Positions 21,910-62,622 of a DNA stretch of 64,000 bases are shown one piece after another (position 1 is the first letter of the stretch; every line of letters begins with the position of its first letter). The stretch lies in contig JAWMAR010000070.1 in NCBI GenBank assembly GCA_036785375.1, positions 4,216,001 through 4,280,000 of the forward strand, in the 5' to 3' direction. The notes beneath the pieces were generated by a model. The model did not search any database, was not told the DNA's origin, and saw only the letters and a program-made list of their open reading frames with translations. The DNA is from Leucoraja ocellata. Taxonomy: Eukaryota. Made by a program: the position numbers and the translations under genes.

Positions 21910-22176
21910 CTAAGAAACGACAGAGGCATAGGTTGACTCAGTGTTCTCTGGAGTCACAGTAGAGTGGGGTTTCCGAATGCCCTTTGGGCAGTTGCGGTGA
22001 AAATTGACATCTGCGTAGACGACAGCGTGTTCAGCCGCATGCTGCCTTGATCTCAACTTCTTTTGACAATTCACCACTGCATACGTGATTCCACCTTCAT
22101 TGTTGTCCAAATGGTCACCTGCCCTGTTGTTTTCCAGATTTGAATCAACGTGGTTCCCTTCCAACACTGCCATTTC
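21910..22176 (-). CDS. Gene B terminal cytoplasmic exon with three ITIMs
   Basis: Acceptor tatatttcag. Motifs ITYAVV, VVYADV and STYASV. Stop at 21910-21912. Confidence 0.88.
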   Translation of the reverse strand, partial: EMAVLEGNHVDSNLENNRAGDHLDNNEGGITYAVVNCQKKLRSRQHAAEHAVVYADVNFHRNCPKGIRKPHSTVTPENTESTYASVVS

Positions 22177-25100
22177 CTGAAATATAACAAAATCCCATTT
22201 TACAACCTAATAGATTTGAAAGGTCCTCAACAGATATCTATTACAAATTAGGTCTCAAACTGTTCAGTGTACAGAACAAGCCATGGCTGCTGTTTACAAC
22301 ACAAAGATAGTGCAGCACGGTGGAGCAGCAGTAGAGTTGCTGCCTGACAGCGCCTACAACGGGTTTGTATTTTAGGTCAATTGGTTTGGTTTAATTGCAA
22401 ATTTCCCCTAGTGTGTGTAGGATAGTGTTCGTGTGCGGGGTCACCAGTCGGCGTGGGCTCGGTGGGCCAAAGGGCGTGTTTCTGCGCTGGATCTCTCGAC
22501 TGGAGTGGACTGGTGTTGCTAAACGGCCTGTGTAAACACAGATAATTCAATATTATATATTCTTCATCACTCAGAAAATGTATATTTCACATTGTTACCT
22601 GGGTTTCATCGTTGTCTTCACCGTGTGATGTATTGTACTTGGATTCTGGAAAATATGTTGTCGATAGGGCCATATCAGGAAAAAGTTTAAACATCATTCA
22701 TTCATATATTCCATTCATGTGTTCCATGTACCTTCTATATCTCGTGTTCCCCTTTCCCCTGACTCTCAGTCTGAAGAAGGGTCTCGACTCGAAACGTCAC
22801 CTGTTCCTTTTCAAGAGTCAAGGGAGTTTTATTGTCATATGTCCCAGATAGAACAATGACAATCTTACTTGCTGCAGCACAATAGAATATGTAAACATAG
22901 TACATAACGGGAGAGAAAAAAAGTTCAGTGTGTATATATACACATACACACATACTCAATCTGTTTATTTTATCCAGCGAAGCTGAGAACTACTATATTT
23001 GATGATTTTCTGTATCGCTTCTGTATCGCTTCTGACCCACTAATTGCTAGAGCATTTTGTGTTTATCTTCAGTGTAAACCACCATCTGCAGTTCCTTCCA
23101 ACACACGAATATCTACGCGATGTTGTCACAACTTTATATTTAGGAGAACCCCAAAAGTACTGCAGTATATTTGCACGTATGGAGCAAGAATCTGCCCTCT
23201 TGTTCTGGTTACTTTATGTAATGTTCAGTATGGAACATATTCCCTGTGCTCTACCCATCCATCCCTACAGCTGCCTAAACCTACCTGATCTCCTGGTTGC
23301 TCAACACTTTAACATTCCCTCCCATTCCCACACTAAACTTTCTGTCCTGGGCCTCCGCCATTGTCAGTGAGGCCGAGCGCAAATTGAAGGAACAGTACCT
23401 CATATTTCGCTTGGGCAGCTTACACCCCAGCTTGAGTTCCCTAACTTCAAGTAGTCCTTGCTTTACCTCTCCCTCCATTCCCCGCTCCTTCCCAGTTCTC
23501 TGACCAGTCTTATTGTCTCCGACTATATTTCATCTCTGTACTGCCATTCTCCTGACATCAGTCTGAAAAAGGGTCACAACCCGAAACATTACACATTCGT
23601 TCTCTCCAGATATGCTGCTTATTTCACTCAGTTACTCCAGCATTTTGTGTCTATCGACCTTTCTCCTGCCTTCTCTCCATAATGCATGGCACCTGTAGTA
23701 TTCAAGAATCTATCTATCAATGCCTTAAAAATATATATTGATAGCCTCCACAGCCTAATGCGGCAACGATTTCCTCATTCACCACCCTCTGACTAAATAA
23801 ACACTTCCCCATCTCCATCCTAAAGGAATTTCCTTTAATTCTGAGGTTATGTCCTCTAGTCCTAGGCTCTCCCACTAGTGGAAACATCCGCTCTACATCC
23901 ACTCTATCCAGGACTTTCACTAATTGATCTTTCAATGATCTCCCCCCACCTCTTTTCCCTCTTTTCCTTTTGTATGATGGGTCTTGGATCTGGAATGTTA
24001 ACTGTTTTACTTCCCACTAATGCTCTCTGACTGAGAAACAGCTCAGTGAACTTTCAGGTTTTCATCAGTGGTGAAGATAGTTGGCAGCTTCAAGTTCATG
24101 GGCGTTCACATCTTGGATTACCTGTCCAAGCTAGACCTGCCCTGCCTCAACTACCTCCTCTGGCAGCTCCTGCCATATACCCACCGCCCTCTGTGTGAGG
24201 CAGGTATGTTGTAGGTTGTATATGTCCCTGTGAGGCTGCAGGCATGATCTTCATTGTAACTGTACTTCACCATGCTTGTGCATGTGACAATAAACTCGAA
24301 ATAACCTAATTTGAAATACAACAGCTAATCACACAATGCATATTTTAACAGCTGAGAGGATGAGAGTATCTATGTAAATCTTACTTCTACCTGGCCTCTT
24401 AGTTCTCACGCATCTCTGCCATTTCACACAGACAGTTTCTGTACAATAATGTTAAAAGAACAGTTTTTGTCACCGAGTCACAATGATAGCATCAAACATG
24501 ATAGCATTATTGATCATTCATGCTTCCTCCTACATTTTAATACTTTAATGCAGGGCATTTGGAGATTAGAACAGAATTAAATCTCTAGACATTCTACAAG
24601 GGACTGAGACATGTATTGTGAAATTATTTAAGGGAAATCAGAAACTCACCCTTGGTTTTATGCTTTCGGTACCAAAGGAAGGCAATGATGAGAATCAGGA
24701 GAAGCACAGTGACACCAGACACAACTATGTAATTGATCCTGTCGGACAGAGAATAGGGAAGGGTGAGACATGGCTCATCATTGATTCTTGGCCTTCAGTA
24801 AAGAACAAAAGTCAAGCATTTATTTGGCACCTTTCATGATTTTTTTGCAGTGTGCAGCAAAGGAAATGAAGTGTAGAATCTGGTTTGGTGGGTAATGCAG
24901 CAGCTAATCTGCTCACATTAAGGTGACATTAACCAATGACCATGAAACTGGTTGAAGAACAACTGCGTCCAACCATTAAGGAACAATGCATGGGAACTGT
25001 TACACTTTTAGAGCAATGATTAGTTTAGTTTAGTTCAGCTGAGTTTGGTTTAGTTTAGTTTAGGTTAGTTTAGATTAAGTTAGTTTAGTTTCGAGATACA

Positions 25101-28100
25101 GCATGGAAACAGGCCTATCGGTGCGTTAAATCTGCGTCAACCAGCAATCCCCAAACACTAGATCTACCCTATACATACCCTGAGACAATTTACGGAGGAC
25201 AATTGACCTACAAACCTTCATGTCTTTGAAATGCTGGGAGAAAACTGGAACACATGGAGAAAACAGGAGAAAACTGGAGAAAACCCACGTGGTCAGTGAG
25301 AGAATGAACAAACTCCATACAGACAGCAACCGTAGTCAGGATTGAACACAAGTCTCTAGGGCAGCAACTCTACCACTGTGGTACCATGAACACCAGGCCA
25401 AAGAGAAGACAATACACTTGGTTCACAATGTGAATGAATTAATGAATGAATGTGTTTTTTGGCCAAGTATTCACTTTTTAGGGCCTTGGCGTTGTGAGGC
25501 TGTGGTTCCACTGGCTGTGTCACTGTGTATTCAGATCAATACTCCAACAGGCCTTTAATGCCAGTGAACTGAAAACACAACTTTCTCCCAATTGAAGCAA
25601 TCCCAATCAAAACATCAGCAATTAGTACATGGCACCTTTCATAGAAAACAGAGTAGTTTACCATGAAGTATACTTGGATCTTTTCGAAGTTTCACAAGAA
25701 TATTCAAGTCCTGTTGGAACAAGGGAATAATAATCAGTTTCACTGCTTTTCACTTGCAGTTAAACAAGAGAGCATGCTTGTCAGATGTAGGGAGTTTATA
25801 GGTTTAATAGACAGGGCAATGTTTTTTCAGTGTAATTTGCAGCAAATGGGAGGTGTTGTCATGAAGTCCTGCGTGGGTTTTCTACGGGATCTTCGGTTTC
25901 CTCCGACACTCCAAAAACCTACAGGTTTGTAGGTTATTTCTCTAAACTAAAGACGTGCAGGTTTGGAGGTTAATGGCTTCAGTAAATTGTCCCTTAATTT
26001 AGAATTGTTCCTAAATTGTAGAATTAGTGTAGCACGCTGGTTCTCTGGAGCTATTACAGGTGTGCAAAGCTATGAGGGACATATATAGGGTACTTTGTGG
26101 GAAATCAGCACAGCAGATGTGCATAGAAGTGGAGAACATATGGTTGGGTTAAGGAGTAGACTATTTGGAGGGTACTTGAGCAAGAAATATTTTTAAACCA
26201 AGATGATGGTGGCACTTAAATTGCCAAGTCTAAGAATAATATCGATGAGCGGCTGGTAAATGGGATAAGTATCGATGGTACTTAATCATAACACAATGGA
26301 TCAAAGCTGATAGTGTCGTCTAGGAGTTAACTGTGGCCACAATTACTGATAATTTCTGTTCCCTTCCCATGTTTGAGCGTCTGTCATGTGGAGATGATGG
26401 AAAGTGAAAATGCTTGGACTGATGTCACTACAGACCTAGTTTAAAGCTGTGTAAACATAAGAGGAAGTTCTAGGCGGGAAACTGGTCTACACCAGCACTG
26501 GGGAATCTGTTTCTGGAGACCAGCAACCAAGTATTGACAAATGGGCCATAATTCCACCATATTAATCTTGATATGTTAATTAAATAATGTGCATGGATTT
26601 CAGGGTGTCGGGGGTTATGGGGAGAAGGCAGGAGAATGGGGTGAAGAGGGGAAGATAGATCAGTCATGATTGAATGGTCTATTTCTGCTTCTATCACTTA
26701 ATCTTATGAACCACCCCACCCCCACTTCCCCTTCTTCTCCTCATCCCCTCCATTACTTACCAGTGCCGTTGATTTTTACTAGGAAATTGCAGGGCACGTC
26801 ACTGCTGGAGATGGACACGTTGACCGTTTCACTGGATTTTGATCCACGTTTATTTGAGGCTGTGCAATAATATTGATGGTGCTGGTGTTTGAAGGATTGA
26901 CAGTGTAGATCCAGGGCATTGTTGTCTGAGATCTTTGAATCCCCAGATGGGGTCTTTTCATACCAGCTGTAGTTAATGGGAAGGGATCCCCAGACCGACT
27001 CACAGGACACTGACACTGAGCCCCCGAGACAGGAGACATTGGCTGGTGACAGAAATCCAAGCACAGGAACAGACGCGTGTTCTGTGGGAAAGGAGCAAAC
27101 AGTCAGACAGTGAGTGAACATCTGAAAATCAAACACTCGCCAATATCCAACATCTCTGTATCTTAGCCAGAGCCGACAGGTTGGAATCTGACCCATCCAT
27201 CCACATAGAGTCGTAGAGTGATACAGCTTAGAAACAGGCCCTTCGGTCTAACTTGCCCGCACTGACCAACATGCCCAATCTACACTAGTTCCACCTGCCC
27301 ATGCTTGGCCCTTAAACCTCTAAACTTATCTTATTCATGTACCTGTTCAAATTTTCTTAAATGTTGCGATAGTACATGCCATAACTACTACCGTCGGACG
27401 GTCGTTTCATATACCTACCAACCTTAGTGTGAAAACGTTACTCCCCTGTTTCTTATTAAATCAACCCCCTACCCCCTCATCTTAAAACAATGTCCTCTGG
27501 TTCTCGATTCCCCTACTCTGGGCAAAAGTCTCTGCATTTACTCGATCTATTCCTCGCATGATTTTGTACCTGCCAGAAGATCATCCCTCATCCTCCTGCG
27601 CGCCAAGAAATAAAGTCCTAGACTGCTCAACCCCTCCCTATAGGTCTGACCCTCAAGTCATTGCAACATCCTTGTAAGTCTTTCCTGCACCTTATTCAAC
27701 TTGACAGGATATTTCCTTTAACATGGTGATTAAAACTGACCACAAATCAGACAAATCATCTGACACATCTTGGATTCTCTTTTACATTTCAGGAATTGCC
27801 AGCAGGAAAGGGAGCATCGTTCATGCAACACCGCCAGATATTCAAAGCAACAAGGAAGCTACCCATTTGTCTAATCAAAATCAAACTGTGTATGCAGGAG
27901 TGCAATAATGAAGGAAATGGACAATGACACTCCAGTACAGATGAGGACAATGTCAGCTACTCAGATGTTACATTTCCAAGCGACAGCCAAATTGCCCGTC
28001 AGAAAGCTCCTTCTCCTCATAATCCATTTACCAGATTTACACTTCACTGTGTCTCTCCATCCTCCCAGCTGCCAGAACTACTATGTCTGGCAGAGAGTGG

Positions 28101-31100
28101 TGAATGTCTGGGTGAATTTCACACAGAGAGTGGTGAATCTCTGGAACTCTCTGCCACAGAGGTAGTTGAGGCCAGTTCATTAGTTATATTTAAGAGGGAA
28201 TTAGATGTGGCCTTTGTGGCTAAAGGGGTATGGAGAGAAGGCAGGTACAGGATACTGAGCTCAATGATCAGCCATGATCATATCGGATGGCGGTGCAGGC
28301 TTAAAGGGCCGAATGGCCTACTCCTGCACCTATTTTCAATGTTTCTATGTCTACGTCTGCCACTGTGCCAGTACACCGCTACACCATCTCCCTTTGCTTT
28401 ACTCCAGCATCTGCAGTTAATTTTGTTTAAATCTGAATCTCTGCCACAATTCTACAATACCAACATTCAAACTCCTCATTAGTGCAACAGTGTCACGATT
28501 AACAACTTTTGTAACTTCCTTGTATCAAATTGTTGATAGTGATACTTTTGCACTAATGAGGTGTGTGAATGGCGGTATTGTAGAATTGTGTGTAGGGGAA
28601 TGGGAAAGTGGAACAACATAGAACTAGTGTGACCGGTGATCTCAAGTCGGTGTGGACTCGGTGGGCCGAAGGATCCGTTTCCATGTTGCATTTGTAAACT
28701 ACAACTAAATATCCCGGTGACATTTTCTGTAACCTCTCCAAACCTTCCACATCTTTTGTTTTATAAAGCGGGGACCAGAACTGTGCACCAGACTCCCACC
28801 TAACAAATGTTTTGTGCGGATGCCAAAGTGGAGACATAAAGTCACTCATTGAGAAACCTACCTTCAGATACTTGGAGATGTACTTTAAATGTTGGTTCGC
28901 CAGGTGCAGTAATTCCACATCTGTACCACCCTGTATCTCCAGAGTGAAGATCCTCCACAGTCACAGTAAATATTCCTCGTGCCGGGTTTTCTGTGATTGA
29001 CACTCTTCCGCTCTGTCCATCTTTCCCATTTGTTTCCACTACATGTGTACACTGGCGACTTGTCTCACGGCACCAGTATTTTGTGTGTGAGCGGTACACT
29101 GCTGCATAGTGACAATCGATTGTGATCGCTCTTCCCACAACCCCTCTTACTTTGCTCTCCGCCCACAGTGCACCTGAAACTGGAAACATATTTCGTAAAT
29201 TGAAGAGCAATATTAGCCTTTCACAAACATACACAGTATAGTATACATCAATGTGTACAGGGGAGTCCGCACAATCATTTCCCTAACTGTGTTGAATTCC
29301 ACCTAGATTGCGACGAGAGACAGACACCGTCCCTCACCATCCGCACAGGTCGTTCCAAAGCGCTTCCCAGCCTGTTGCAATTGGAAGGCGCTGTCTAGGG
29401 AGTCTCTGCATCAGCGGGGGAGGTTGAGGATGGGGTGTCTATCAAGCGCGATTCTGGGTCATGACAGACCAAGCACAAGTGTTCAGCAAAACTGTGGCCT
29501 ACGCCAGTGCTTCTTAAACTGGTGAATGGTTCACCCAAGGGTGAATTAGATTATTTTGGGGTGAATGAGTTAATTCATGTTTTTTTTTTGCTCATGTGAC
29601 AAAATAATTTATCTATAAAATTATACAAAAGGGAGAATGAGATGAATATTACCAAAAAAACAAAAGGACATTTAGTAGAGGTTGAAGGAAATTTTGTGAT
29701 AAAGACTCAAGGGTGAATGACACTGAAATAGTTTAAGATGCACTGGCCTTGGCTGCGCTTGTTCTCACTGATGTAAACCATTCACAATCTCTTCTGGACT
29801 TCCAATCTGAGCGTCTCCACACCTTCCGGGAGTTTCATTCCAAAATTATCTTTGAAAAAAGTAAGGGTTATACTTGATGGAGTGACGGCCAAGTAGATTC
29901 CAAATTAATTTTGTGAGATTACTGGAGTTCCAGTGATTCTCACAAATTAACGAAGTTAAAATCATGAACATGATCATGAAATTGTACATTAGATAGGTCT
30001 AAAGAAGGGTTTCGGCCCGAAACGTGGCCTTCGCTCCATAGATGCTTCTGCACCCGCCGAGTTTCTCCAGCACTTTTGTCAACCATGAAATTATACATCC
30101 CTGTTTATAAATGATGATGGATCAAATATAATTAATTTGGTTGCATTCTCTGTCTCAAAGTGACTGTGAGATCTTAAACGGCAGCCAGAAAATCATTTTT
30201 AAGGCAGAAGGCAGAAATTGATGGAATGCTCTCAACCCGTTATGATAAGTGAAGGTCTTTCCTCATTTCGAAGCTCAACACTTCCCAGGTGAAAGCAACA
30301 GGCAATTATTTGCCAGTCCCCCAAACAAACTCCCACATGTTACACCATGAGCTCACGGTGGCTGCAATGATGCCGCCTGCAAATACCTAGAAACCCACGA
30401 CCATCACCACAAGGTGAAAAGCAGCAGCTACAAGGACACGAGAGGAATTGTGAAACAGTATTCCCACGGGAAAATAACACTCACCTGTATTGTTCATTTT
30501 TGTCACATAACTGCACGTTCCTTCACCTTTGAAGACTTTCACGTTGAGTATTTCACTGGATTTCCCCCCACGATTATTTGAGGCTCTGCAGTAATATTGA
30601 CGGTGTTGGCCGGCGAGGATTTCACAACTCAGAACCAGTTGATTGCCAGACAAGATCGTTGACCACCCATACACGTTCTTCCCAAACCATGTGTAATAGA
30701 TGGGAAGGGATCCACGGACAGACTCACAGGACACTGACACTGAGCCTCCGAGACGTGAGGCATTTGCTGGTGACAGATATCTGAGCACAGGAGCAGACAC
30801 GGGTTCTGTGGGAATGGAGCAAACATTCAGTCACCTGTATGAACAGTTAAACACCAAACACATGCTAAATCTCAGCAGCCCTTTATCTCAGCCCGAATCG
30901 TCCGGGTGATATCTCACCGGCTCATCTACATCTCTGTGAGTGTGCGAAGCCCAGAAACTGAAGAAGGTTAGAGTTATAGAGAACCGAAAGATGCCCATCA
31001 CAACAGCTCATTCATGCCGACCAACATGTCTTTCTGGGCCATTTCCATATGTCCACGTTTCTCCTTTGTCACTCGCAATGATCCCAATCTACTCAACTGT

Positions 31101-34100
31101 CCAAAATGTATTTTAAATGCTATTATTCTAACTGCCTCAACAACTTCCTCTGGCATCAGGTTCCATATAAATAACACCCATTGTGTGAAAAATGTTGTCC
31201 CTCAGAACAGAAGTTGGGATGTTATGTTTCAGTTGTACATATGTTATTGAGGTCGAACGTGGGCGAATTGTGTTCAGCTTCGGCCACTCATCTGTACGAA
31301 ACATGCCATTACAGTAAGTGACACCTTACTATTCCCCCCTCTTTAAATAGTTCCCATTGCGTCCGTCCTCCACTTCCTCATCCCACAAATCGTGGGAAAA
31401 TGAACATGCTTCTCGTGATTGATACATTTCTATAAGTTCCTCGCTCAATCATTTCCACACCAAGGAATGAAGTCTGAGTTTGCCCAATCGCTCCCTGCGT
31501 CAATCCCATCCTGTCCAGGCAGCGTCGCCCTAAAACCTTTCTGCACGCTGTCCACCTCAACGGCACTTTCCTTGGAGCTGAGGGACTAAAGCTGAACACA
31601 ATTCCCAAAGTGTGGACTCAACATCTGCAAGTCTGAAGCAGATTATCTCCAATTATGTTCTGAATGATCTCACTGATGAAGACCAGCGTGCCAAAAACCC
31701 TGTTCAATGCCTTGGAATGTATAGACAACAATTAGTTACGATCCCTTTAAGCTAGACACAAAATGCTGGAGCAGGAGCAGGCAGCAGCTCTCGAGAGAAG
31801 AAATGGGTGACGTTTCGAGTCGTGACCCCTTTTCAGCCTGCGAGCCACGAGAAAGGGATACAGAAGAGAAAAGAAGGGATAAGGTGTGAACACAAGTGAT
31901 CAAGGTGAAAATGTAAAAGGAAAATGTAGACTCGATAATTGTCAGCTGAAGGGAAAGTGCCAGCGAGGCAAACAATCAGCCAAATATAATCAAAATGTCT
32001 TTGAAACTAATGGGGGGGGGGGGGGGGGGGGGGGAGGGGGGGAGGAGGAGGAGTAAAGCAAGGGTTACTTGAAGTTAGAGGTCAATATTCAACCAAGTGG
32101 AGGAGGTCCAGGACAGAAAGATCAGTTTGGTAATGGGAGGGGGTATTGAAGTGTTTAGCAATCAGGAAGTAGCGTAGGCCGAGGCAGAGTGAGCAGAGTT
32201 GATCAGCGAAACGAACGCCGAGTCTGGGCTTGGCCTAGACCACATATGGGAGTTCACACCTGGAACAGTGGATATAGTAGACGAGTTTGGAGGAGATGCA
32301 GGTGAACTTCTGCCTCACCCGAAAAGACTATTGTAGTCCTTGGACGGAGTAGAGGGGGGAGGTGTATGGACAGGTGTTGCATCCGCTGCAGTTGTAGGTA
32401 CCTGGGGACGGGGTGGTTTGGGTGGGAAAGGACGAGTTGACCACGGAGTTGCGGAGGGAACGGTCACTTCGGAAAGCAAAAAGCGGTGGAAATGGAAAGA
32501 TGTGGCTAGTTGTGGGATCCCGTTGTAGGTGGCGAAAATGTCGGAGGATTATATGCTGTGTGCGACGGCTGATGGGGTGAAAGATTAGTTTATTCTGCTT
32601 ACCACCAGGGAAATGTCAGGGCGGAGAGGCTGGCTGGCTGCCGGGCGGTGGGTGGACAGTGGCTGTTGGGTGTGGGGGCGCATTGACGGGGCAGAGGGAG
32701 TGAAAGAGAGCGCGCGAGGTAGGGAGGGAGTGACTAATCCCTGAGGTGGGGTCGGGGAGCGGGCTGACCTGCCCCGGGAGGACTGAACGATGTCTGTTGA
32801 GCTTTGGGGACTGATGCCATGTTTATGATTCACCGGGTATTCAGACCGCGACCAACACTTGTTTCTCACTGACCTGTCGGATTATGAGTTTGAGTGGGAA
32901 TGCAAACCTCTGACAGAGTGACATTTCATACAGTTCAGAGGCAATGCCAATGTGCTGATGCCTGAGCTTGAAGTGGGTGACCGTTCAGTGGGTCATACTC
33001 CGCACTGGGTGAGAGCAACATGAGTGGGGTTTCCCGACCCCCGCCCGACCCCCGCCCGCTCCCCGCAGGTCTCTGTACTGCTGCGGAGCCTCGGGATATC
33101 GGTGCTGCCCTGATTCTTCCCGGAGAAAACATGGATCAGGCATTTCAGTGGAGACGTCAAGTCAATCGCTGCGAAACGTACCGTCAGATACTCGGAGTTG
33201 TACGATAAATGGATGGGCGGCAGATGTAATTCCACATCTGTACCACCCTGTATCTCCATAGTGAAGATCCTCCACAGTCACAGTAAATATTCCCCGTGAC
33301 GGGTTATCTGTGATTGACACTCTTCCACTCCGTCCGTGTTGCCCATTAGTTTCCACTAATACTATACATTGGCGACTCCTCCCACGGCACCAGTATTTTG
33401 TGTGTGAGCGGTTCTCTGCTCCATAGTGACAATCGATTGTGATCGCTCTTCCCACAACTCCTCTTCTATCCCCCTCTCCCCACACTGAACCTGAAACTGA
33501 GGGGAGAAACATTCAGATGGAGAGCAAATGAACTGTTTAATGGAAATAGATACATTTCGAAGATTACATGAAAGAAAACTTAAATAGTTCCATGATGTGT
33601 CATATTGCTTCACGGCCAATGTCTCCGGTCTGAAGACAGTGCTGTTATTGTACCAGTTGTGTCAGTGTTCTGTCCCCGGGTCAGTACAATTTGGGTCCAG
33701 GTCCCTGAGCAGAAACTGGGCTGGGATCGCAGTGCGGTACTGAGGGAGCGCGGCAGTGTTGCAGGAGCTGTCTTTCAACAATCCCAGGCGGTGCCCGGCC
33801 TCTCACCACACAGAAAGACCCCACTTTGCTATTTCATTGGCGGTGCCGCCGGCTGCGCTGCCAACATTCATCTCTCAACCGACACTGGGCAGGACCCGTG
33901 TTTATACATTCACCGCCTTTACAACGCCCTGACTGAGGACAGAGGACGGACGGGTTACAATAAAGCGGGTCCCTTACTGGAGAGCGTTACTAGCGTGAAC
34001 ACGCACACCGCCAGATTCAGGGACAGTTTCATCCCAGCTGTTATCAGGCATCTCAATCATCCTACCACAAACAGAGAGCGGTGCTGAACTCCCATCTACC

Positions 34101-37900: not shown

Positions 37901-38138
37901 TTAAAAACAGTAGTTCGAAGCTGACGAAGGAAACCTTGGAAGAGGTGGCAAAAATTAAGATGGTGCAAGCTAGGAGTCTTCATTGTAATTCGTGGGTCGA
38001 GTGGCGAGTTCTGTGTCGTCGCGTCTCTGCAAAAGACAATGTGAAGTCATCAGACAGACGGACAGTGGGAACCACGCTTTATTTGTCCCGGCCACTCCCA
38101 ACACATTGCTGTCTGCAAGATGCTAACCCACGAATTAG

Positions 38139-38264
38139 TTAATCCAATGCCACCGGGCACAGAAATCCACCCTGCACGCGTACAACCTGACAGAACCTCG
38201 TGATATCATCTACATAGGGATTTGGTTTAACTTCAGGATATGAAAACGTGCAGGATTTTTGTTT
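38139..38264 (-). CDS. Gene C candidate terminal exon ([20 protein letters not shown]..)
   Basis: Phase-0 acceptor cctgtccatcgatag. AATAAA at 38078-38083 is conserved in copies A and D. Confidence 0.5.
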   Translation of the reverse strand, partial: KQKSCTFSYPEVKPNPYVDDITRFCQVVRVQGGFLCPVALD

Positions 38265-50200: not shown

Positions 50201-52676
50201 TGGGAAAGGACGAGTTGACCAGGGAGTTGCGGAGGGAACGGTCACTTCGGAAAGCAAAAAGCGGTGGAGATGGAAAGATGTGGCTAGTTGTGGGATCCCG
50301 TTGTAGGTGGTGAAAATGTCGGAGGATTATATGCTGTGTGCGACGGCTGATGGGGTGAAAGATTAGTTTATTCTGCTTACCACCAGGGAAATGTCCGGGT
50401 GGAGAGGCTGGCTGGTTGCCGGGCGGAGGGTGGACAGTGGCTGCTGGGGGTGGGGGCGCATTGACGGGGCAGAGGGAGTGAAAGAGAGCGCGCGGGGTAG
50501 GGAGGGAATGACTGATCCCTGAGGTGGGGTCGGGGAGCGGGCTGACCTGCCCCGGGAGGACTGAACGCAGTCTGTTGAGCTCTGGGGACTGATGCCATGT
50601 TTATTATTCTCCGGGTATTCAGACCCCGAGCAACACTTGTTCCTCACTGATCTGTCGGATAATTAGTTTGAGTCGGAATGCAAACCTCTGACAGGGTGAC
50701 ATTCATACAGTTCAGAGGCAGGGAAATGTGTTGAACATCCCACTTGAAGTGGGTGGCCGCTCAGTGGGACAGAGCCCGCACTGGGTGAGAGCAACATGAG
50801 TGGGGTTTCCCGACCCCCGCCCGCTCCCCGCAGGTCTCTGCACTGCTGCGGAGCCTCGGGAAATCGGTGCTGCCCTGATTCTTCCCGGAGAAAACATGGA
50901 TCAGGCATTTCAGTGGAGACGTCAAGTCAATCGCTGCGAAACGTACCGTCAGATACTCGGAGATGTACGATAAAAAATGGATGGGCGAGTGATGTTGTAA
51001 TTCCACATTTGTACCATCCTGCATCTCCAGAGTGAAGATCCTCCACAGTCACAGTAAATATTCCTCGTGTCGGGTTATCTGTGATTGACACTCTTCCACT
51101 CCGTCCGTGTTGCGCATTAGTTTCCACCAACACTGTACATTGGCGACTCCTCCCACGGCACCAGTATTTTGTGTGTGAGCGGTACTCTGCTGCATAGTGA
51201 CAATCGATTGTGATCGCACTTCCCACAACTCCTCTTATATCCCCCTCTCCCCACACTGAACCTGAAACTGAGAGGAGAAACATTCAGATGGAGAGCAAAG
51301 GAACTGTTTAATGGAAATAGATACATTTCGAAGATTACATGAAAGAAAACTTAAATCGTTCCACGATGTGTCATATTGCTTCACGGCCAATGTCCCCGGT
51401 CTGAAGTGCAGACAGTGCTGTTATTGAACCAGTTGTGTCAGTGTTCTGTCCCCGGGTCAGTACAATTTGGATTCACTTCCCACTCCAGATCCCTGAGCAG
51501 AAACTGGGCTGGGATCGCAGTGCGGTACCGAGGGAGCGCGGCAGTGTTGCAGGAGCTGCCTTTCAACAATCCCAGGCGGTGCCCTGCCTCTCACCCCACA
51601 GAAATACCCCACTTTGCTATTTCATTGGCGGTGCCGCCGGCTGCGCTGCCAAAATTCATCTCTCAACCGTCACTGGGCCAGACCCGTGTTTAAACATTCA
51701 CCGCCTTTACAACGCCCTGACTGAGGACAGGGGACGGACGGGTTACAATATAGCGGGTCCCTTACTGGAGAGCGTTACAAGCGTGAAAACGCACACCGCC
51801 AGATTCAGGGACAGTTTCATCCCAGCTGTTATCAGGCATCTCAATCATCCTACCACAAACAGAGAGCGGTGCTGAACTCCCATCTACCTCTCTGATGACC
51901 CTCGGACTACCCTTGATCGGACTTTGCTGGCTTTACCTTACACTAAACGTTATTTCCTTTTCATGTATATATGCACTGTAAGATGATCGATAACAATCAT
52001 GGATTGTCTTGTTGAGTTAGCTCGCAACAAAAACGCTTTTCACTCTACGTCGGTACAAGTGACAACACGTGACAATAAACTAAACTGAATTTGGAAACCG
52101 CTGGTCATCTGGGACAGGTTCTATTCCCAATGACCCCGGATCGCCTTGGACCTTTCAGCACGACTCGGCCGCGGATTGGAGAGAGGATGGAGAGAGATTT
52201 GGGAGCGGGTGGATAGAGGGAGGAGAGTGGTTCAGTCTCATATTCCGGGCAATTGTTGGGTTTACGACAGAGTTTAGTTGGACAAATGCAGGGAATATTT
52301 GAACTGACACAATGAGTCCACAATCGTGACTTCCGCCTCAGTTGTAAACACATTTTGTTAATGTAGAATTAACGTCCTGGTGATGTTGGAACCTCTGTTC
52401 TTCGGTCCAGGTGTCTTGGAGTATCTGTTCCAAATTTATTCGCTATTTTATGCCTTTCATCAATACTCGAACAAAGTCTAGATATTCAAATATGAATTCA
52501 GATCCATCACCACAATGCACTGAGTTCCATTTTCCCCATTACATGTCTACACACACATAACCATCTGTGCTGTGGAAAGGGTGCACGGGACCCCAACTAA
52601 CATTGATCATTGGAATATCAACATCTGGCTTTCACTCACCCGGCAGCGAGGAGATGAGAAGAATGGGAATCCACAT
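38139..52676 (-). CDS. Gene C: activating-type MDIR-like receptor L-V-C2-V-C2-(stalk in gap)-charged TM-short tail; one frameshift in domain 4
   Basis: Exons 52640-52676, 50947-51267, 48382-48702, 46696-47013, 44633-44952 (320 nt), 41109-41199 and 38139-38264. Continuity depends on the scaffold join at the gap. Confidence 0.72.
38615..41060 (+). mobile_element. CR1 LINE, 5'-truncated, many frameshifts (paralog of 55812-58250)
   Basis: Fragmented ORFs with CR1 RT motifs [25 protein letters not shown] and FADD. Confidence 0.9.
41109..41199 (-). CDS. Gene C charged transmembrane exon ([30 protein letters not shown])
   Basis: 91 nt, canonical splice sites. Confidence 0.8.
43540..43739. other. 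Assembly gap (200 N)
   Basis: Run of N. Confidence 1.
44633..44952 (-). CDS. Gene C Ig C2 exon (domain 4) with a 1-nt deletion near 44640
   Basis: gtgccgtgatttt versus gtgccgttgatttt in B and D. 320 nt instead of 321. Confidence 0.85.
46696..47013 (-). CDS. Gene C Ig V exon (domain 3)
   Basis: 318 nt, [11 protein letters not shown]. Confidence 0.9.
47443..47682. mobile_element. hAT-type MITE (paralog of 29505-29745)
   Basis: Same TIRs and same insertion site. Confidence 0.75.
48382..48702 (-). CDS. Gene C Ig C2 exon (domain 2)
   Basis: 321 nt, open, canonical splice sites. Confidence 0.9.
50947..51267 (-). CDS. Gene C Ig V exon (domain 1)
   Basis: 321 nt, two codons longer than gene B in the FG (CDR3-like) loop. 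Confidence 0.9.
52640..52676 (-). CDS. Gene C leader exon ([12 protein letters not shown])
   Basis: ATG at 52676, donor g|gtgagt. Confidence 0.85.
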
Positions 52677-53372
52677 TGTTTCATCCATAGTGACAAGGCC
52701 AGCACTTGTCTGTCTGTCGCTCAGCTCTGAGCTCTCAGATACACCCGCATCTCTCAAATAGCAATGAGGAAGAAGGGAACAGGAAGTCACACCGTGAACC
52801 ACAGCGAGCCAGCAGCAGCTCGACACGATATAGTGTGAAATGCTCAGGGTTATATTTAGCAAATGGTTGGGTCAGTTGTTCACAGAGTCATCCAGCAGGA
52901 AACAAGCCCTTTTCCCCAAGCGTTAAACCAATATGCTCATCCAAGTTGGTCAAATTTGCCCCAAACCTTCCCTATCAATGACCCTGTCCAAGGGCCCATT
53001 ACATATTGTTATTGCAGCTGCTTCAACCACTTCGTCAGGTATGATGTATCCGCAAGGATGGAGCGGCGGTTGTCTCTGTACTCAGAGTCTGTTAACACTG
53101 AACAGTGGTGGAAATAATGACAGACAAAAAAATGCAGGAGCAACTCTGCGGGCCCGGCAGCACCTCTGGAGAGAATGGATAGGTGACGTTTCGGGTCCGG
53201 ACCCTTCATGTAAACAATGATACGTTACATAAAATATGATATTTAGAAGAGTAGAAACGTCTAAGATGTGTACAATTTCTGATCATTCCCTTTTGATGAT
53301 TTTGTAAGTGGACCGGCAGATCAAAAATATAATCATTGGAACTTTTGTTGTGGCATATCGCTGTTGACAAGG

Positions 53373-54850: not shown

Positions 54851-55370
54851 GCTCGACTAAATTCCAGAGAAACTTCTTCACAGTCCACCACACCATTAAG
54901 TTTTCATTTTCAAAACGTGTCGTTGCATAATTTGGGTCTAATGGGATAGCATAGTCTGAAAGATTAATTGAATGCCTTCTCTAAACGCCTTTAATGTTTG
55001 GCAACAAGAGGAATATCAAGCAGTCTAATCAAAACAAATTAGACAAACCGTTTATTGACAACAACCATTTATTAAGAAGCATTCTGTTGCATTATTATTC
55101 ATTAATCTGTGAAACAAAATCCAGGAAATTGTATGCATTTAATATAGTATAACAGAGTATAAAACTCTGAAGCAGCAGAAACCACGCAAAGGTTAAAACA
55201 ATAGTTCGAAGCTGACGAAAGAAACCTTGGAAGAGTTGGCAAAAATTAAGATGGTGCAAGCTAGGAGTCTTCATTGAAATTCGTGGGTCGAGTGGCGAGG
55301 TTCTGTGTCATCGCGTCTCTGCAAAAGACAATGTGAAGTCATCAGACAGACTGACAGTGGGAACCACGCT

Positions 55371-58300
55371 TTATTTGTCTCGACCACTGCCAACACATTG
55401 CTGTCTGCAAGATGCATAGAGATTTGGTTTAACCTCAGGATATGAAAACGTGCACGATTTTTGTTTCTATCGATGGACAGGATATATGAAAGCATTAATG
55501 GAAACCGTTTGGAAACACTCGGCGAAGAGAAGGGATTGCTTTGGGCGAATCCCTTCTGGTGAATCTATGGATTTCATTGCCACAGGAGGCTGTGGAGGCC
55601 AAGTTAATTCACACCGGAGATGCTGCCTGTCCCGCTGAGCTACTCCAGCATTTTTGTATCTGTCCAAATCAATTGATATTTTTAAGGCGGAGATTTTCAT
55701 TTTCTTGATAAATAAGGATGTCAATGGCTATGGGGAGAAGGCAGGTGAATGGGATCGAGAGAGAAGGATAGATCAGCCGTGATTGGCGGCCGATTAGATA
55801 TGATGAGCTGATTGGAGGAAGTGGATTTCTTGGAATGTATGCAGGATAGTTTTCTAAACCAACATGTAGAGGAACCTACGGGAGAGCAGGCTATTCTAGA
55901 CTGAGTATTGAATAATGAGGAAGGGTTATTTAGAAGTCTTGTTGTGCGTGGCCCCTTGGGCAAGAGTGACCATAATATGGTTGAGTTCTTCATTAGGATG
56001 GAAAGTGACATTGTTAATTCAGAAACAAGGGTCCTGAACTTAAAGAAAGGTAACTTTGAGGGTATGAGATGTGAATTGGCCAAGATAGACTGGCAATTGA
56101 TTCTAAATGGGTTGACGGTGGATATGCAATGGAAGGCATTTAAAGACTGCATGGATGAACTACAACAATTGTTCATCCCAGTTTGTCAAAAAAAATAAAT
56201 CAGGGAAAGTAGTGCATCCGTGGATAACAAGGGAAATCAGGAATAGTATCAAAACAAAAGATGAAGCGTACAAATTAGCCAGAAAAAGCAGCCTACCAGA
56301 GGACTGGGAGAAATTCAGAGGCCAGCAGAGGAGGACAAAGGGCTTAATTAGGAAAGGGAAAATAGATTATGAAGGAAAACTGGCAGGGAACATAAAAACT
56401 GACTGCAAAAGCTTTTATAGATATGTGAAGAGAAAAAGATTAGTTCAAACAAATGTAGGTGCCTTGAAATCAAAAACAGGTGAATTGATCATGGGGAACA
56501 AGGACATGGCAGACCAATTGAATAACTACTTTGGTTCTGTCTTCACTGAGGAAGACATAGATAATCTGCCGGAAATAGCAGGGGACCGGGGGTCAAATGA
56601 GATGGAGGAACTGAGTGAAATCCAGGTTAGCCGGGAAGTGGTCTTAGGTAAATTGAATGGATTAAAGGCCGATAAATCCCCGGGGCCAGATAGGCGGCAT
56701 CCCAGAGTACTTAAGGAAGTAGCCCCAGAAATAATAGATGCATTAGTGAAAATTTTTCAAAACTCTTTAGATTCTGGAGTAGTTCCTGAGGATTGGAGGG
56801 TAGCTAATGTAACCCCACTTTTTAAAAATGGAGGGGGAGAGAAAACGGGGAATTACAGACCAGTTAGTCTAACATCGGTAGTGGGGAAACTGCAAGAATC
56901 AGTTATTAGAGATGGGATAGCAGCACATTTGGAAAGTGGTGAAATCATTGGACAAAGTCAGCATGGATTTATGAAAGGTAAATCATGTCTGACAAATCTT
57001 ATAGAATTTTTCGAGGATGTAATTAGTAGAGTGGATAAGGGAGAACCAGTGGATGTGTTATATCTGGACTTTCAGAAGGCTTTCGACAGGGTCCCACATA
57101 AGAGATTAGTATACAAACTTAAAACACACGGTATTGGGGGTTCAGTATTGATGTGGATAGAGAACTGGCTGGCAGACAGGAAGCAAAGAGTTGGAGTAAA
57201 CGGGTCTTTTTCACAATGGCAGGCAGTGACTAGTGGGGTACCGCAAGGCTCAGTGCTGGGCCCCCAGCTATTTACAATATATATTAATGATTTGGACGAG
57301 CGGATTGAATGCAACATCTCCATGTTTGCGGATGACACGAAGCTGGGGGGCAGTGTTAGCTGTGAGGAGGATGCTAGGAGGCTGCAAGGTGACTTGGATA
57401 GGCTGGGTGAGTGGGCAAATGCATGGCAGATGCAGTATAATGTGGATAAATGTGAGGCTATCCACTTTGGTGGCAAAAACAGGAAAGTAGACTTATATCT
57501 GAATGGTGGCCGATTAGGAAAGGGGGAGATAGAACGTGACCTGGGTGTCATGGTACACCAGTCATTAAAAGTAGGCATGCAGGTGCAGCAGGCAGTGAAG
57601 AATGCGAATGGTATGTTAGCATTCATAGCAAAATGATTTGAGTATAGGAGCAGGGAGGTTCTACTGCAGTTGTACAGGGTCTTGGTGATACCACACCTGG
57701 AGTATTGCGTACAGTGTTGGTCTCCTAATCTGAGGAAAGACATTCGTGCCATAGAGGGAGTACAGAGAAGGTTCACCAGACTGATTCCTGTGATGTCAGG
57801 ACTTTCATATGAAGAAAGACTGGATGGACTCGGTTTGTACTCGCTAGAATTTAGAAGATTGAGGGGGATCTTATAGAAACTTGCAAAATTCTTAAGTGGT
57901 TGGACAGGCTAGTTACAGGAAGATTGTTCCCGATGTTGGGGAAGTCCAGAACAAGGGGTCACAGTTTAAAGATAAGGGGGAAATCTTTTATGAGATGAGG
58001 AAAACCTTTTTCACACAGAAAGTGGTGAATCTCTGGAATTCTCTGCCGCAGAAGGTAGTTGAGGCCAGTTCATTGGCTATATTTAAAAGGGAGTTAGATG
58101 TGGCCCTTGTGGCTAAAGGGACCAGGGAGTATGGAGAGATGGCAGGTACAGGATTCTGAGTTGGATGATCAGCCATGCTCATATTGAATGGCGGTGCAGG
58201 CTCGAAGGTCCGAATGGTCTACTCCTGCGCCTATTTTCTACGTTTCTATGGCCTAATTCTGCTCTTATAATTTATGAACATGATGACAGTAAACCCTACC

Positions 58301-61300
58301 TTTGAGCCTCTTGTGAGCACCGCGGTTGAGATACTCCAGATCACAAGCAGGAGAAAGAACATCCAGCGCCCCACTTTCCATGAGATGTAACTGGGCAAAG
58401 GTCAAGAAATACAGAGTCAATTGGAGGAAACGAGACGGTTAATCTTTGAAGCATTTACCTGTTATTTGCTTCATAATCTTGGTGAAGTGGAGCGGGGCGA
58501 AGCGGCAGCATCAGTGGAGACCATCTTTGTAAAAGAACGGGTGTTGGACTGGGGGGAGGTGGGGGGGGGGGGGGGGGGGGAACAACAGATGATCACCAAT
58601 TGTTGACGTCATTGTTGGGGCATGGCTACAAGACTGGGAATGAGAGACTACGCGGTTAAATGGATTCGGAGAAGACAGATAAATAAGATGAGTTGGGACA
58701 GTGAATACAAAACAGATGGACACAAAATGTTGGAGAAACAGCGGGAGTGGCAGCATCTCTCCGGAGAGAAGGAATGCGTGAAGTTCCGGGTTGAGACCCT
58801 TCTTAAGACCGAGAGTCACGGGAGAGGGAAACTGTGGATGTGGAAGGATACAAAGAACAGTGTGATACCCTGGAAGAAATAAAATGCAGCTGCAAGGAAG
58901 ATTATAATAAAATCCATTTGGATAGACAGGAATAATAAAAACGGATCAATTCCAATAATGGAAGGGAGATGGGCAATAAAAATGGAAACAGATGAGGCCA
59001 ATTAATAAAATAAATTTAAAAATGATTATGCTTAATGTCACACCCTGGATACTTCGTGGATCAACGCGGTAGGGTGTGGATGGAGGAATTGTGTTCGAAA
59101 AATCGGTTAAAGATTCGTTCATAACGGCGTGGCTTTCATGAACATTTGCTAACGCAAGTATAACACAAGAGTGTGATAGAAAGTCAGATATATTTCAATT
59201 GTGATAAGATAAATAACAAAGTGTTCTCACTTTCATGACTATATTATGATTGAATATTTAATGGTTTCAAGTATCAACGAGTAAGAGAGAGTCAGTTAAC
59301 TCATTTTGCTGTATTCGGTCTGATTCAAGACTATTTTCTCACATTTTGCGCCAGCGATTTTCTGGTGTATGGCCCCATCAATGACAAGGTGTTGCCACAA
59401 GTGATATCAAGGGGAGTGTGGCGTAGCCCATCATTCATAAAGCATGTTCCTATCAGCACCACACAAGAGCACGTCACAGCAAAGCCGAACTGGAAGACTA
59501 GAGTTTGGGAACTATATTAATCTCACAGCATGGGATGAGGTGAGTAATGGAGCAGTCATGTTGAATACTGCAGGGAACGCTCTCTGAAAAGCATCAAATG
59601 GAGGAACTTGTGCTTATCATCCAAGCATGTACACAACACAATGAGATGTAAACCAGTGCGATTCCCTTTCTGATGAGTTAACTAATAACTGGTTTGCAAG
59701 ACACAGTATGGAAACAGGCCATTTGGCCTTCAAATCTCTGCTGTCCATCAACCGCATTTACACAAATCCTGTGAGAAGAAGTTTGGTCTTTAGTTGTGGG
59801 AGTCAGTAGGTTTATAATAGACATCGGTCGATAGTCTATCTCCTGTGATGGAGACGGTGTGATCGAGAAAGGGGAGGAGGGGTTTGGAGATGGTCCAAGT
59901 GCATTTGAGTGCCAGGTGGAGTGCAGGAGACCATTCCCTCTGCAACCCTGTGGAATGTCCCAATTCTACGCCTATCCCTTATGACCTTATGACCTATACC
60001 TCCCTAGTTATCTCTTCCTTTCCCATCCAAACCACCCTCTCCCCAATACCTTCCCCTTCAAATGCAGGAAATGCAACATCTGTCCCTATAACTCCGCCCT
60101 CGACTCGGTCCTAGGAACTCAACAGTCATTTGAGATTCGGCTGAGTTAGCGTAAACCGCCTCGAACCTCATTTATTGTATCAGGTGTGGACTCTGATACA
60201 TCAGCAAGACAAAACATTGACTGGACGATCGTTTCACTGAACACATATGCTCAGTCCGCCTGGGGCTATTTGATCTCCCAGTTGCTAAACTATTAACCCC
60301 CCCTCCCATTCCTACACTGACTGTTCTATTCTGGGCTTTCTCCATTGCCAGAGTGAGGCCAAATGGAAATTGGAGGTACAGCGCCACACATTTCGTTTGG
60401 GCATCTTACAGCCAACAGGTATAAATATTGATTTCTATAACTTCAAATAACCCTTGCACCCCCTTGCTCTCCGTCCCTCCCCCACCCTAGTCATTGTACC
60501 AATTTCACTGTTGTCTTGTTGTGTCTCATTGTCCGTACAACTCGTTTTCACCTAGCCCACAGCTAACAATTGTCTTATATCTTTCTATATCACCGTCGAT
60601 ATCGCTCTCGTTTCCCTTTCCCCTGACTCTCACTCTGAAGAAGGGTCTCAACCCGAAACGGCACCTATCCCTTTTCTCCAGAGATGCTGTCTGACCCGAC
60701 GAGTTACTCCAATTGTTTGCGCCCATATTCAGTTTAAACCAGCATCTGCAGTTCCTTCACACACAATGAAAGGCAAAATATGCAGAACACACATAGACTA
60801 AGTTCAGGGTCTTGGCATTGTGAGGCTGTGGTTCCACTGGCTGTGTCTGTGCATTCAGATCAATAATCTCAAGGGCCTTTAATGCCAGTGAACGGAAGAC
60901 ACAACTTTCTCCCAATTGAAGTAATCCCAATCAAAACACCAGCAATTAGTACATGGCACCTTTCATTGGAATCAGAGTAGTTTACCTTGATGAAGCATTG
61001 GATCCTTTCGAGGTTTCACAAGAATATTCAAGTCCTGTTAGAACAAGGAAATAAAAATCAGTTTCACTGATTTTCACTTGCAGTTGAACAAGAGAACATG
61101 CTTGTCCGATGTAAGGAGTTTATAGATTTAATAGACAGGGCAATGTTTCTCCAGTGTAATTTGCAGCAAATGGGAGATGCTTGCACAACTCAGGTAGAAC
61201 TCAGGTCGCCAACATTAGGGCGGCATAGCGGTAGAGTTGCTGCCTTGCAGCGCCAGAGACCCGGGTTCAATCCTGACTACGGGTACTATCTGCACAGAGT

Positions 61301-62622
61301 TCGTATGTTCTCCCTGTGACCGCGTGGGTTTTATTCAAATGCTCCGGTTTTCTCCCACATTCTAAAGACGTGCAGGTTTTGAGGTTAATTGCCTTCTGTA
61401 AATTGTCCCTAGTGAGTAGGATGAAATTGGTGCACCGGTTAAAGGCAGTTGCTTCCACCTGGATTTCTAAACCAAACTAAAGGAGGTGATTTCATGCGAG
61501 GGATAGTGCCTGGGATGAAATTACAGTTCGAAGGAGAAGGCTGGATAGATGGGGATTTTAATCCATATAGGAAAAGAAGGGGGGACCTATTACCGGTGTG
61601 TAAAGCTACGAGGAACATAGATAGGGTATTTTGTGGGAAATCAGCACAGCAGATGTACGAAGAAGTGGAGAACATAGGGTTGGGTTAAGGAGTAGAATAT
61701 TTGGAGGGTATCTGAGCAAGATGTATTTTTAAGCTTAGATAGTGGAGGCACTTGGATTGTCAACTCTGAGAAGACTGTGGATGAGGGGCTGGTAAAATGG
61801 ATTAGTATCGATGGTACTAAATGGTCAACATTAACACAATGGACCAAAGCTGATAGGAGTTAATTCTATGAGGTAACTGCGGCCACATTTACTGATAATT
61901 TCTGTTCCCTTCCCATATTTGAGCGTCGATCATGTGGAGATGACGGAAAGTGAAAGTGCTTGGACTGATGTCACTGCAAACCAAAGCTGTGTAAACATAA
62001 GAGGAAGTTCTAGCCCGGAAGCTGGCCTACACCAGCAATGGGAAATCTGTGGCTGGAGCCCAGCAACCAAGTATTGACAAATGGGCCATAATTCCATCAT
62101 TTTAATCTTGATAACTTAATTAAATAACGTGCATGGATATCAGGGTGTCGGGGGTTTGGGGAGAAGGCAGGAGAATGGGGTGAAGAGGGGAAGATACATC
62201 AGCCATGATTGAATGGTCTATTTCTGCTTCTATCACTTGTGATTTTATGAACCACCCCACCCCCACTTCCTCTTCATCTCCCCATTCCCTTCACTACTTA
62301 CCAGTGCCGTTGATTTTCACCAGGAAATTGCAGGGCACGTCACTGCTGGAGATGGACACGTTGACCATTTCACTAGATTTTGTTCCATTATTATTTGAGG
62401 CTGTGCAATAATATTGATGGTGCTGGTGTTTGAAGGATTGACAATGTAGATCCAGGGCATTGTTGTCGGAGATCTTTGAATCCCCAGATGGGGTCTTTTC
62501 ATACCAGCTGTAGTTAATGGGAAGGGATCCCCAGACCGATTCACAGGACACTGACACTGAGCTCCCGAGACAGGAGACATTGTCTGGTGACAGAAATCCA
62601 AGCACAGGAACAGACACGGGTT
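55371..62622 (-). CDS. Gene D (3' part): C2-stalk-charged TM-short tail of an activating-type receptor; 5' exons lie beyond the window
   Basis: Exons 62302-62622, 60986-61034, 58300-58390 and candidate 55371-55466 are in frame. AATAAA at 55370-55375. Confidence 0.78.
55812..58250 (+). mobile_element. CR1 LINE, 5'-truncated, with a 493-aa RT ORF
   Basis: ORF 56155-57636 has [37 protein letters not shown] and FADD. CR1 3' UTR follows. Confidence 0.93.
58300..58390 (-). CDS. Gene D charged transmembrane exon ([30 protein letters not shown])
   Basis: 91 nt, canonical splice sites. Confidence 0.82.
59960..60760 (+). mobile_element. Degenerate Penelope 3' fragment (paralog ~42740-43539)
   Basis: GIY-YIG relic (gatcgtttcactgaaca, aaattggagg..catttcgtttgggc) and pLTR core ctgaagaagggtctcaacccgaaacg. 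Confidence 0.75.
60986..61034 (-). CDS. Gene D stalk exon (GLEYSCETSKGSNASS)
   Basis: 49 nt, phase 1 to 2. Confidence 0.8.
62302..62622 (-). CDS. Gene D Ig C2 exon (domain 4)
   Basis: 321 nt, intact. Confidence 0.9.

Follow-up and report, generated by a model that had tools for sequence, protein, structure and literature searches.

The closest described relatives of the genes considered here are MDIRs (modular domain immune-type receptors) from the clearnose skate, Rostroraja (Raja) eglanteria. These receptors, with both kinds of signalling back-end among them, were reportedly obtained as cloned complementary DNAs by Cannon et al. 2006 (Immunogenetics 58:362). The present analysis deals with a 64,000-nucleotide (nt) stretch of contig JAWMAR010000070.1 of another skate, Leucoraja ocellata; this whole stretch is called the window throughout. 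It harbours at least four receptor genes of this kind, designated B, C, D and A, together with remnants of others. In the literature, the clearnose skate MDIRs are mentioned in a passage of PMC3031540 that cites Cannon et al. 2006; PMC6795676 makes no mention of MDIRs.

Two better-known systems resemble the locus in organisation. According to passages of PMC12447643 and PMC2803305, CD300A and CD300C (MAIR) combine a member that carries ITIMs (immunoreceptor tyrosine-based inhibitory motifs) with a member bearing a charged transmembrane (TM) segment; their ectodomains are similar, and both belong to one cluster. The skate genes share this arrangement, and their V domains are CD300-like, but in CD300 proteins one V domain stands without any C2 domain, and any homology of their charged TM residue and tail to the cassette described below is putative. 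In macaque activating KIR (a KIR3D ectodomain with the TM and tail of KIR2DL4), a ready-made arginine (Arg) TM cassette has been joined by recombination to an inhibitory ectodomain, and this Arg form couples to FCER1G, not DAP12 (passages of PMC8102735). KIRs are an unrelated immunoglobulin (Ig) family with C2-type domains throughout, and the macaque event is primate-specific, whereas the MDIR exchange recurs across elasmobranch lineages.

The window quite probably represents part of a minus-strand tandem MDIR array in which receptors of the B and D types would give opposite signals by way of exchanged back-ends. The family and both back-ends (those of MDIR3 and MDIR5) are already on record; the locus contributes further members with genomic detail, and breadth. 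New with respect to the known MDIRs are the genomic layout, the exon phases, a recombination boundary after the stalk exon, a long interspersed nuclear element (LINE) in the TM to tail intron, an Ig-less gene (A) and a broken one (C).

Two back-ends behind related ectodomains

All searches with window sequence were run exon by exon. The putative inhibitory form is represented by gene B, which can be followed from leader to stop codon:

34883-34919, minus strand: leader exon with a phase-1 GTGAGT donor
33182-33496, minus strand: V1 exon, 315 nt, phase 1-1, CD300/pIgR-like V-set
30485-30805, minus strand: C2-1 exon, 321 nt, phase 1-1, Ig_2/Ig_3
28862-29179, minus strand: V2 exon, 318 nt
26761-27081, minus strand: C2-2 exon, 321 nt
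25662-25710, minus strand: stalk exon, 49 nt, phase 1 in and phase 2 out, one cysteine (Cys)
24650-24738, minus strand: neutral TM exon, 89 nt, phase 2 in and phase 1 out
22599-22645, minus strand: small cytoplasmic exon, 47 nt
21910-22176, minus strand: last coding exon, with ITYAVV, VVYADV and STYASV, then a stop

The Ig exons of this gene are all phase 1-1. The neutral TM and three ITIMs that the initial annotation had assigned to gene B can be read directly from the exons at 24738-24650, 22645-22599 and 22176-21910. Gene B may accordingly be described as a receptor of MDIR3 type with a V-C2-V-C2 ectodomain, a Cys-bearing stalk, a neutral TM, three ITIMs and a presumably inhibitory role.

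The second kind of back-end is marked by a TM exon encoding WKVGRW. A motif search of the window finds exactly three copies, all on the minus strand, against a chance expectation of 0.00. In each case the exon is 91 nt long, has a GTAGG donor and a pyrimidine-rich AG acceptor, and is entered in phase 2 and left in phase 0. The three copies belong to genes D, C and A. Gene D lies at the edge of the window and is represented there by its four 3' exons (C2-2, stalk, TM and tail), all of which are intact; poly(A) signals follow at 55143, 55073 and 55056, 130-260 bp past the tail exon.

Gene D:
62302-62622, minus strand: C2-2 exon, 321 nt; the exons 5' of it are outside the window
60986-61034, minus strand: stalk exon, 49 nt
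58300-58390, minus strand: Arg-TM exon, 91 nt, phase 2 in and phase 0 out, with stranded RNA reads
55415-58247, plus strand: LINE insertion in the TM to tail intron
55271-55318, minus strand: tail exon, RRDDTEPRHSTHEFQ and stop, 15 codons plus stop

Gene C:
52640-52688, minus strand: leader exon, ATG at 52688 or 52676
50947-51267, minus strand: V1 exon, 321 nt
48382-48702, minus strand: C2-1 exon, 321 nt
46696-47013, minus strand: V2 exon, 318 nt
44633-44952, minus strand: C2-2 exon, 320 nt, with a base missing close to the 3' end, donor phase 0
43540-43739, no strand: assembly gap in the intron between C2-2 and TM, flanks collinear with gene D
41109-41199, minus strand: Arg-TM exon, 91 nt
38561-41057, plus strand: LINE insertion in the TM to tail intron
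37970-38026, minus strand: tail exon with a 1-nt deletion and a frame-shifted short tail

Gene A and its surroundings:
14791-15108, minus strand: orphan V2-like exon upstream of the gene A leader, remnant of a further copy
11466-11502, minus strand: leader exon of a four-exon gene
9996-10044, minus strand: stalk exon, 49 nt, CxC variant
8748-8838, minus strand: Arg-TM exon, 91 nt
8098-8139, minus strand: tail exon, 13 codons plus stop, with an in-frame 6-nt deletion relative to D

The four exons of gene A (leader, stalk, TM and tail) are all open and phase-compatible, and no Ig exon lies among them. Its product would be a membrane protein of roughly 70 residues, which may compete for the same adaptor. 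The orphan V2-like exon upstream is identical to gene B V2 at 97/104 amino acids and is followed at 13723-14095 by sequence like the intron 3' of C2-2; within this copy, no C2-2, stalk or TM exon was found.

The V-C2-V-C2 ectodomain that had been proposed for all four genes is found in B and C; gene A has no Ig exon, and of gene D only C2-2 falls within the window. Similarly, homology of C, D and A from the upstream exons through the stalk is borne out by C2-2 and stalk in D and by the Ig exons in C, in gene A it is limited to leader and stalk, and in gene C the stalk is unread. It was not found in the assembled sequence of that gene; in D, the stretch that matches the unread interval is where the stalk exon lies. 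The gap at 43540-43739 is intronic and interrupts no coding exon. On either side of it, C 43410-43539 corresponds to D 60583-60709 and C 43740-44400 to D 61411-62069; this collinearity with D, in unchanged orientation, makes the order across the gap plausible.

The 49-nt stalk exon (AG...GTAAAC) is entered in phase 1 and left in phase 2, in frame with both types of TM exon. A pattern search of the window gives two exact matches, in B and D, and a diverged copy is present in A. As had been noted at the outset, both TM exons begin in phase 2 and so accept the stalk donor; therefore, any ectodomain can be combined with either back-end. A single gene might yield both forms through alternative TM cassettes, since both fit the same donor phase. 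This explanation is rejected as extremely improbable: there is one kind of back-end per gene, with matches to the B-type TM and tail only at 24746-24651 and 22179-21913, and matches to the Arg-TM exon only at three places, downstream of D, C and A, after each of which comes the leader of the next gene.

Comparison with homologues revealed that the tail of D, C and A has a small exon of its own. The short, ITIM-free tail of the initial annotation holds in that tyrosine motifs are absent, with the amendment that it is encoded by a separate 15-codon exon, located beyond the LINE insertion in C and D. Reading through the TM donor was considered as a source of the tail and ruled out: the read-through sequence differs among A, C and D owing to repeats, and the conserved tail exon matches MDIR5. 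It was also ruled out that the WKVGRW exon is part of a neighbouring LINE or short interspersed nuclear element, as homology with A runs across the exon and the repeat begins about 35 bp past the donor. The LINE in the TM to tail intron, about 2.5-2.8 kb long, is shared by C and D and absent from A, which places its insertion after the split from A but before C and D were duplicated.

The long minus-strand open reading frames (ORFs) in the ORF list are the Ig exons. In a Pfam search, five of them were assigned to V-set (E about 1e-13) and another five to Ig_2/Ig_3 (E 1e-5 to 1e-6); no family was matched by the gene B ORF with tyrosine motifs. The nearest solved structures to the V exon are those of the polymeric immunoglobulin receptor (pIgR; E 5e-54) and CD300 (E about 1e-16), with NKp44 and TREM also among the PDB neighbours, and for the C2 exon FcRL5 (E 3.5e-41). 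The ectodomain is thus an alternation of V-set (CD300/pIgR-like) and Ig_2/Ig_3 (FcRL-like) modules, as in MDIRs. The V exons match D1-type domains of pIgR best, but that receptor has four to five tandem V-type domains, no C2 domain and a long transcytosis tail, as opposed to V-C2-V-C2 with ITIM-bearing or 15-residue tails. The C2 exons match FcRL5 best, but FcRL proteins are all C2-type, whereas half of the domains at the locus are V-set domains of CD300/pIgR type. In the alternation of V and C2, and in stalk, TM and tails, the locus agrees with neither of the two. As far as domain matches can tell, the mixture fits the mosaic nature of MDIRs, and neither the pIgR nor the FcRL5 name fits the whole protein.

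Family membership was addressed with the gene D C2-2 exon as query against 1.84 billion representatives. This search returned 645 proteins at E<=1e-3, 41 of them at E<=1e-30. All named close relatives are from elasmobranchs (skates, rays, sawfish and sharks); they have been automatically annotated as pIgR-like, FcRL5-like or CMRF35-like, and the relatives contain from one to six modules. Among them are Modular domain immune-type receptor 2, 3 and 5 of the clearnose skate (P0165, P0248 and P0171, respectively), so the kinship check against skate MDIRs recovers MDIR2, MDIR3 and MDIR5 as relatives of the window exons. No genome contig is attached to these three records, which for MDIR3 and MDIR5 is as expected for cloned messages. 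The window exons are 80-90% identical to MDIR5 (V2, C2-1, C2-2 and TM), 70-84% to MDIR3 and 60-68% to MDIR2; the clearnose skate MDIRs are those of another species, with exons 70-90% identical.

The two back-ends correspond to two different MDIRs. MDIR3 is like gene B: the stalk and the three ITIMs are the same, the TM is neutral and about 71-84% identical, and the tail is 75% identical, but there are five Ig domains rather than the four of B. MDIR5 is like D, C and A, with a V-C2-V-C2 ectodomain, a Cys stalk, a WKVGRW TM identical to those of A and D at 28/31 positions, and a homologous 15-residue tail of RDESEP type. The statement that the MDIR family includes both ITIM-bearing and charged-TM forms is therefore confirmed, as MDIR3 and MDIR5 show the two back-ends, spliced as read here. 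Both occur at the locus, where B carries three ITIMs and D, C and A share the Arg-TM, in keeping with an MDIR multigene family.

Exchange of back-ends between ectodomains

The ectodomain exons of B and C are identical at 375/417 amino acids (91/103, 93/107, 95/104 and 96/103 for the individual exons), with 0.06-0.07 synonymous substitutions per site (dS) and a ratio of non-synonymous to synonymous rates (dN/dS) of 0.5-1.1 that is based on small counts. The C2-2 domains of B and D are identical at 95/103 amino acids, and those of C and D are separated by 1 non-synonymous and 4 synonymous differences. B and C resemble each other more than they do relatives from other skates (70-86%). B and D remain homologous as far as about 185 bp 3' of the stalk exon (25477/60803), beside interspersed repeats, and further on the back-ends share nothing.

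This pattern extends beyond the window. A tree was calculated from 75 membrane-proximal C2 domains, comprising B, C, D and 72 of 77 classified domains (the remaining 5 were not membrane-proximal and were dropped). In 40 rows the domain is followed by an Arg-TM and in 35 by a neutral TM with ITIMs; these counts rest on a strict classification, since a simple ITIM regular expression gave false matches inside Ig domains. TM type has to change 18 times on this tree, compared with a mean of 25.1 after shuffling, and well-supported branches force at least 10 of these changes; with an alignment of 107 columns and many open forks, the exact number of changes is soft. Activating and inhibitory sisters are found within the window's own species and within Rhinoraja, Narcine, Hypanus and Mobula. 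Given that the Arg-TM cassette forms one homologous unit and TM type is interleaved on the tree, ectodomains and back-ends have been re-paired repeatedly. The route may have been exon shuffling or gene conversion.

The central claim of the initial annotation, namely that the same ectodomain stands on two non-homologous back-ends that behave as interchangeable cassettes, is upheld by both the B/C comparison and the interleaving on the C2 tree. At the level of sequence, the locus displays what is expected of paired receptors: similar neighbouring ectodomains, with ITIMs on one side and a basic TM residue plus a short tail on the other. The proposed course of events is as follows. Back-ends would have been swapped by recombination in the intron, about 185 bp 3' of the stalk exon and beside the interspersed repeats. 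The ITIMs of gene B would recruit SH2 phosphatases such as SHP-1, SHP-2 or SHIP, and the Arg of D-type receptors would pair with an acidic TM residue of an adaptor carrying an immunoreceptor tyrosine-based activation motif (ITAM), for which FcR-gamma, CD3-zeta and DAP12 are candidates. Upon binding similar ligands, B and D could then give opposite signals.

State of the Arg-TM genes and role of the arginine

A number of observations on the genes, their transcripts and the arginine itself weigh against this account, and these are brought together here with the alternatives that they would favour. Gene C as assembled cannot encode a membrane receptor, because it carries two 1-nt deletions and its stalk is unread. 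One base is missing 9 nt before the C2-2 donor (window 44633-44652) relative to B and D, and a second from the tail exon relative to D and A. Gene A is without an ectodomain, and gene D lies only partly inside the window. The locus does hold paired back-ends, but the 'several' activating members that had been counted alongside the inhibitory one are an overstatement, given a broken C, an A without ectodomain and a partial D.

The Arg-TM copies may, then, be decaying by-products of tandem duplication, with C a pseudogene, A an Ig-less remnant and only B and perhaps D working, so that there would be no functional pair here. The two deletions in C and its missing stalk, the lack of Ig exons in A with an orphan V exon upstream, and the LINE insertions that C and D carry between TM and tail exons would all be in line with such decay. 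Nevertheless, the four visible exons of D and the four of A are open with intact splice sites, the C2-2 exons of C and D differ by a single non-synonymous against four synonymous changes, and a LINE-bearing intron is compatible with splicing. The deletions in gene C shorten two-base runs near the assembly gap; consensus error is possible, the other option being a young pseudogene. All in all, decay of the Arg-TM copies is considered rather unlikely.

Transcript data bear on the same question. When public sequencing runs were queried with the gene D C2-2 exon, none held it strongly (best share 0.32), and none of the holders listed is recorded as RNA. Reads from a polyA RNA run (X14), a DNA run from the same study (X13) and two small runs presumed to be RNA were aligned to 57000-62750, which includes 1.25 kb of LINE. 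About ten X14 reads cover the gene D TM exon; they carry the variant at three sites in 9/9, 11/11 and 10/10 cases, and all have the first mate on the plus strand, which in the usual stranded libraries means minus-strand RNA. In X14, depth is 2.99 against 0 for the TM exon bin and 6.15 against 0.31 for the C2-2 exon bin, and it is about 0 in the intron bins at 58920-59687, although the DNA run covers these. The depth of the TM-exon bin is nearly all accounted for by its 47 exon bases; therefore, the reads stop before the upstream intron. The gene D TM exon is thus transcribed on the right strand in a related organism.

That it is a related organism follows from the reads themselves, most of which are 90-95% alike, and the TM exon shows three fixed differences, one of them lysine (Lys) to glutamate. 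No joint between these exons is among the exon-exon joint rows listed, which are mostly repeat-derived. Two further contigs were not counted as evidence: an X2 contig that ends within a base of the TM donor, and a 191-letter X2 contig that leaves the genome at the C2-2 donor.

As to the arginine, a pattern for the TM segment that left the Arg and tryptophan (Trp) positions free was applied to 241 retrieved proteins. Of the homologous TM segments that it found, ranging from skates to sharks, 41/41 contain Arg-Trp. The position three before the Arg is variable, the five commonest residues among 37 distinct homologous segments being K (16), D (11), N (3), T (3) and S (2), and the RNA reads of the related organism have glutamate where the window has Lys. 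Of the Lys/Arg pair singled out in WKVGRW, the Arg is thus conserved and the Lys is not. The Arg-TM cassette as a whole is conserved across skates, rays, sawfish and sharks, as is the short acidic tail (RRDxSEP), which carries no known motif. Most homologues are gene predictions, some of them chimaeric or stalk-skipping, and this too has to be set against the account given above.

In three gene models, P0002 and P0154 from Leucoraja erinacea and P0037 from Amblyraja radiata, C2-2 is joined straight to the Arg-TM exon and the stalk is skipped, which puts the TM exon out of frame, with a stop after 16 residues. These models represent either prediction error or a secreted isoform. P0005 of Rhinoraja longicauda, annotated as 'TRIM69-like', is a chimaeric model in which a TRIM/B30.2 gene is fused to an MDIR5-type receptor.

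The remaining objections concern what the Arg does. Its place is the helix's outer edge, just two residues deep in the hydrophobic run. Cannon et al. 2006 reportedly listed MDIR5 among the members without characteristic signalling motifs. The MDIR5-type back-end might therefore be other than activating: the Arg could serve anchoring or assembly, for instance of dimers disulphide-linked through the stalk Cys, and the receptor could be a non-signalling decoy or co-receptor. The absence of a known motif from a conserved tail suits this option. In a type I TM, however, a basic residue placed in the outer third contradicts the positive-inside rule and is a hallmark of FcR-gamma-coupled receptors (NKp46, Fc-alpha-RI, LILRA and those of KIR2DL4 type). 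The invariance of Arg-Trp beside a position that admits K, D, N, T and S likewise argues against a mere anchor, and the existence of an ITIM-bearing twin whose ectodomain is nearly identical agrees with the pattern of paired receptors. With regard to the adaptor, a passage of PMC4016189 reports that an FcR-gamma homologue was not found in the cartilaginous-fish data of 2014, which speaks for a non-signalling role. Such a role is judged improbable, and an activating role for the D-type back-end, opposed to the ITIMs of gene B, continues to be preferred.

Layout of the array and its meaning

Receptor genes B, C, D and A are arranged in tandem, all on the minus strand, and at least four receptor genes and remnants are packed into 64 kb. 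Self-comparison of the window reveals duplicated units on the same strand: unit B (26047-35521) matches unit C (43918-53257) with 90-95% identity, unit C (37626-53372) matches unit D (54918-64000) with 93-97% identity, and a fourth unit, A, gives partial matches at 8079-15526. An artefact of assembly duplication was ruled out, as the copies differ by 3-10% and each has private indels. The only N gap in the window is that at 43540-43739.

Several other features accompany the array. Another leader exon of the MDIR family at 1599-1649 (minus strand) marks the start of the next gene, which leaves the window. In the spacer between the last exon of gene B and the orphan V exon, 16044-17829 and 19641-21103 form a local direct duplication with about 82% identity. 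An inverted duplication of a reverse-transcriptase/endonuclease-like element (1746-2608 and 3487-4349) is 99.9% identical over 863 bp. In the V2 to C2-2 intron, an antisense relic of an ITIM tail exon is found on the plus strand at 45617-45857 (C), 63314-63554 (D) and 27775-28026 (B). Its identity to the Rhinoraja P0004 C-terminus is 70-79%, and it contains internal stops; this exon of another family member travels with the duplication unit.

For a cartilaginous fish, the locus shows exon by exon how a paired receptor cluster is built, with the homology boundary mapped. The joint between exchangeable ectodomains and two unrelated back-ends is one small phase-2 stalk exon. The repeated re-pairing of activating and inhibitory forms in skates, rays and sharks is the pattern expected of pathogen-driven evolution of paired receptors.

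More tentatively, and with somewhat less than even confidence, it can be proposed that the MDIR5-type back-end is an ancient activating cassette of elasmobranch innate receptors, the Arg-Trp of which couples to an ITAM adaptor, with ectodomains repeatedly exchanged or homogenised between it and ITIM tails since before the split of sharks and rays. If so, the Ig-less product of gene A, consisting of stalk, TM and tail, could compete for this adaptor, and paired-receptor dynamics, along with some adaptor, would be as old as jawed vertebrates. The invariant Arg provides a concrete residue for tracing the elasmobranch adaptor.

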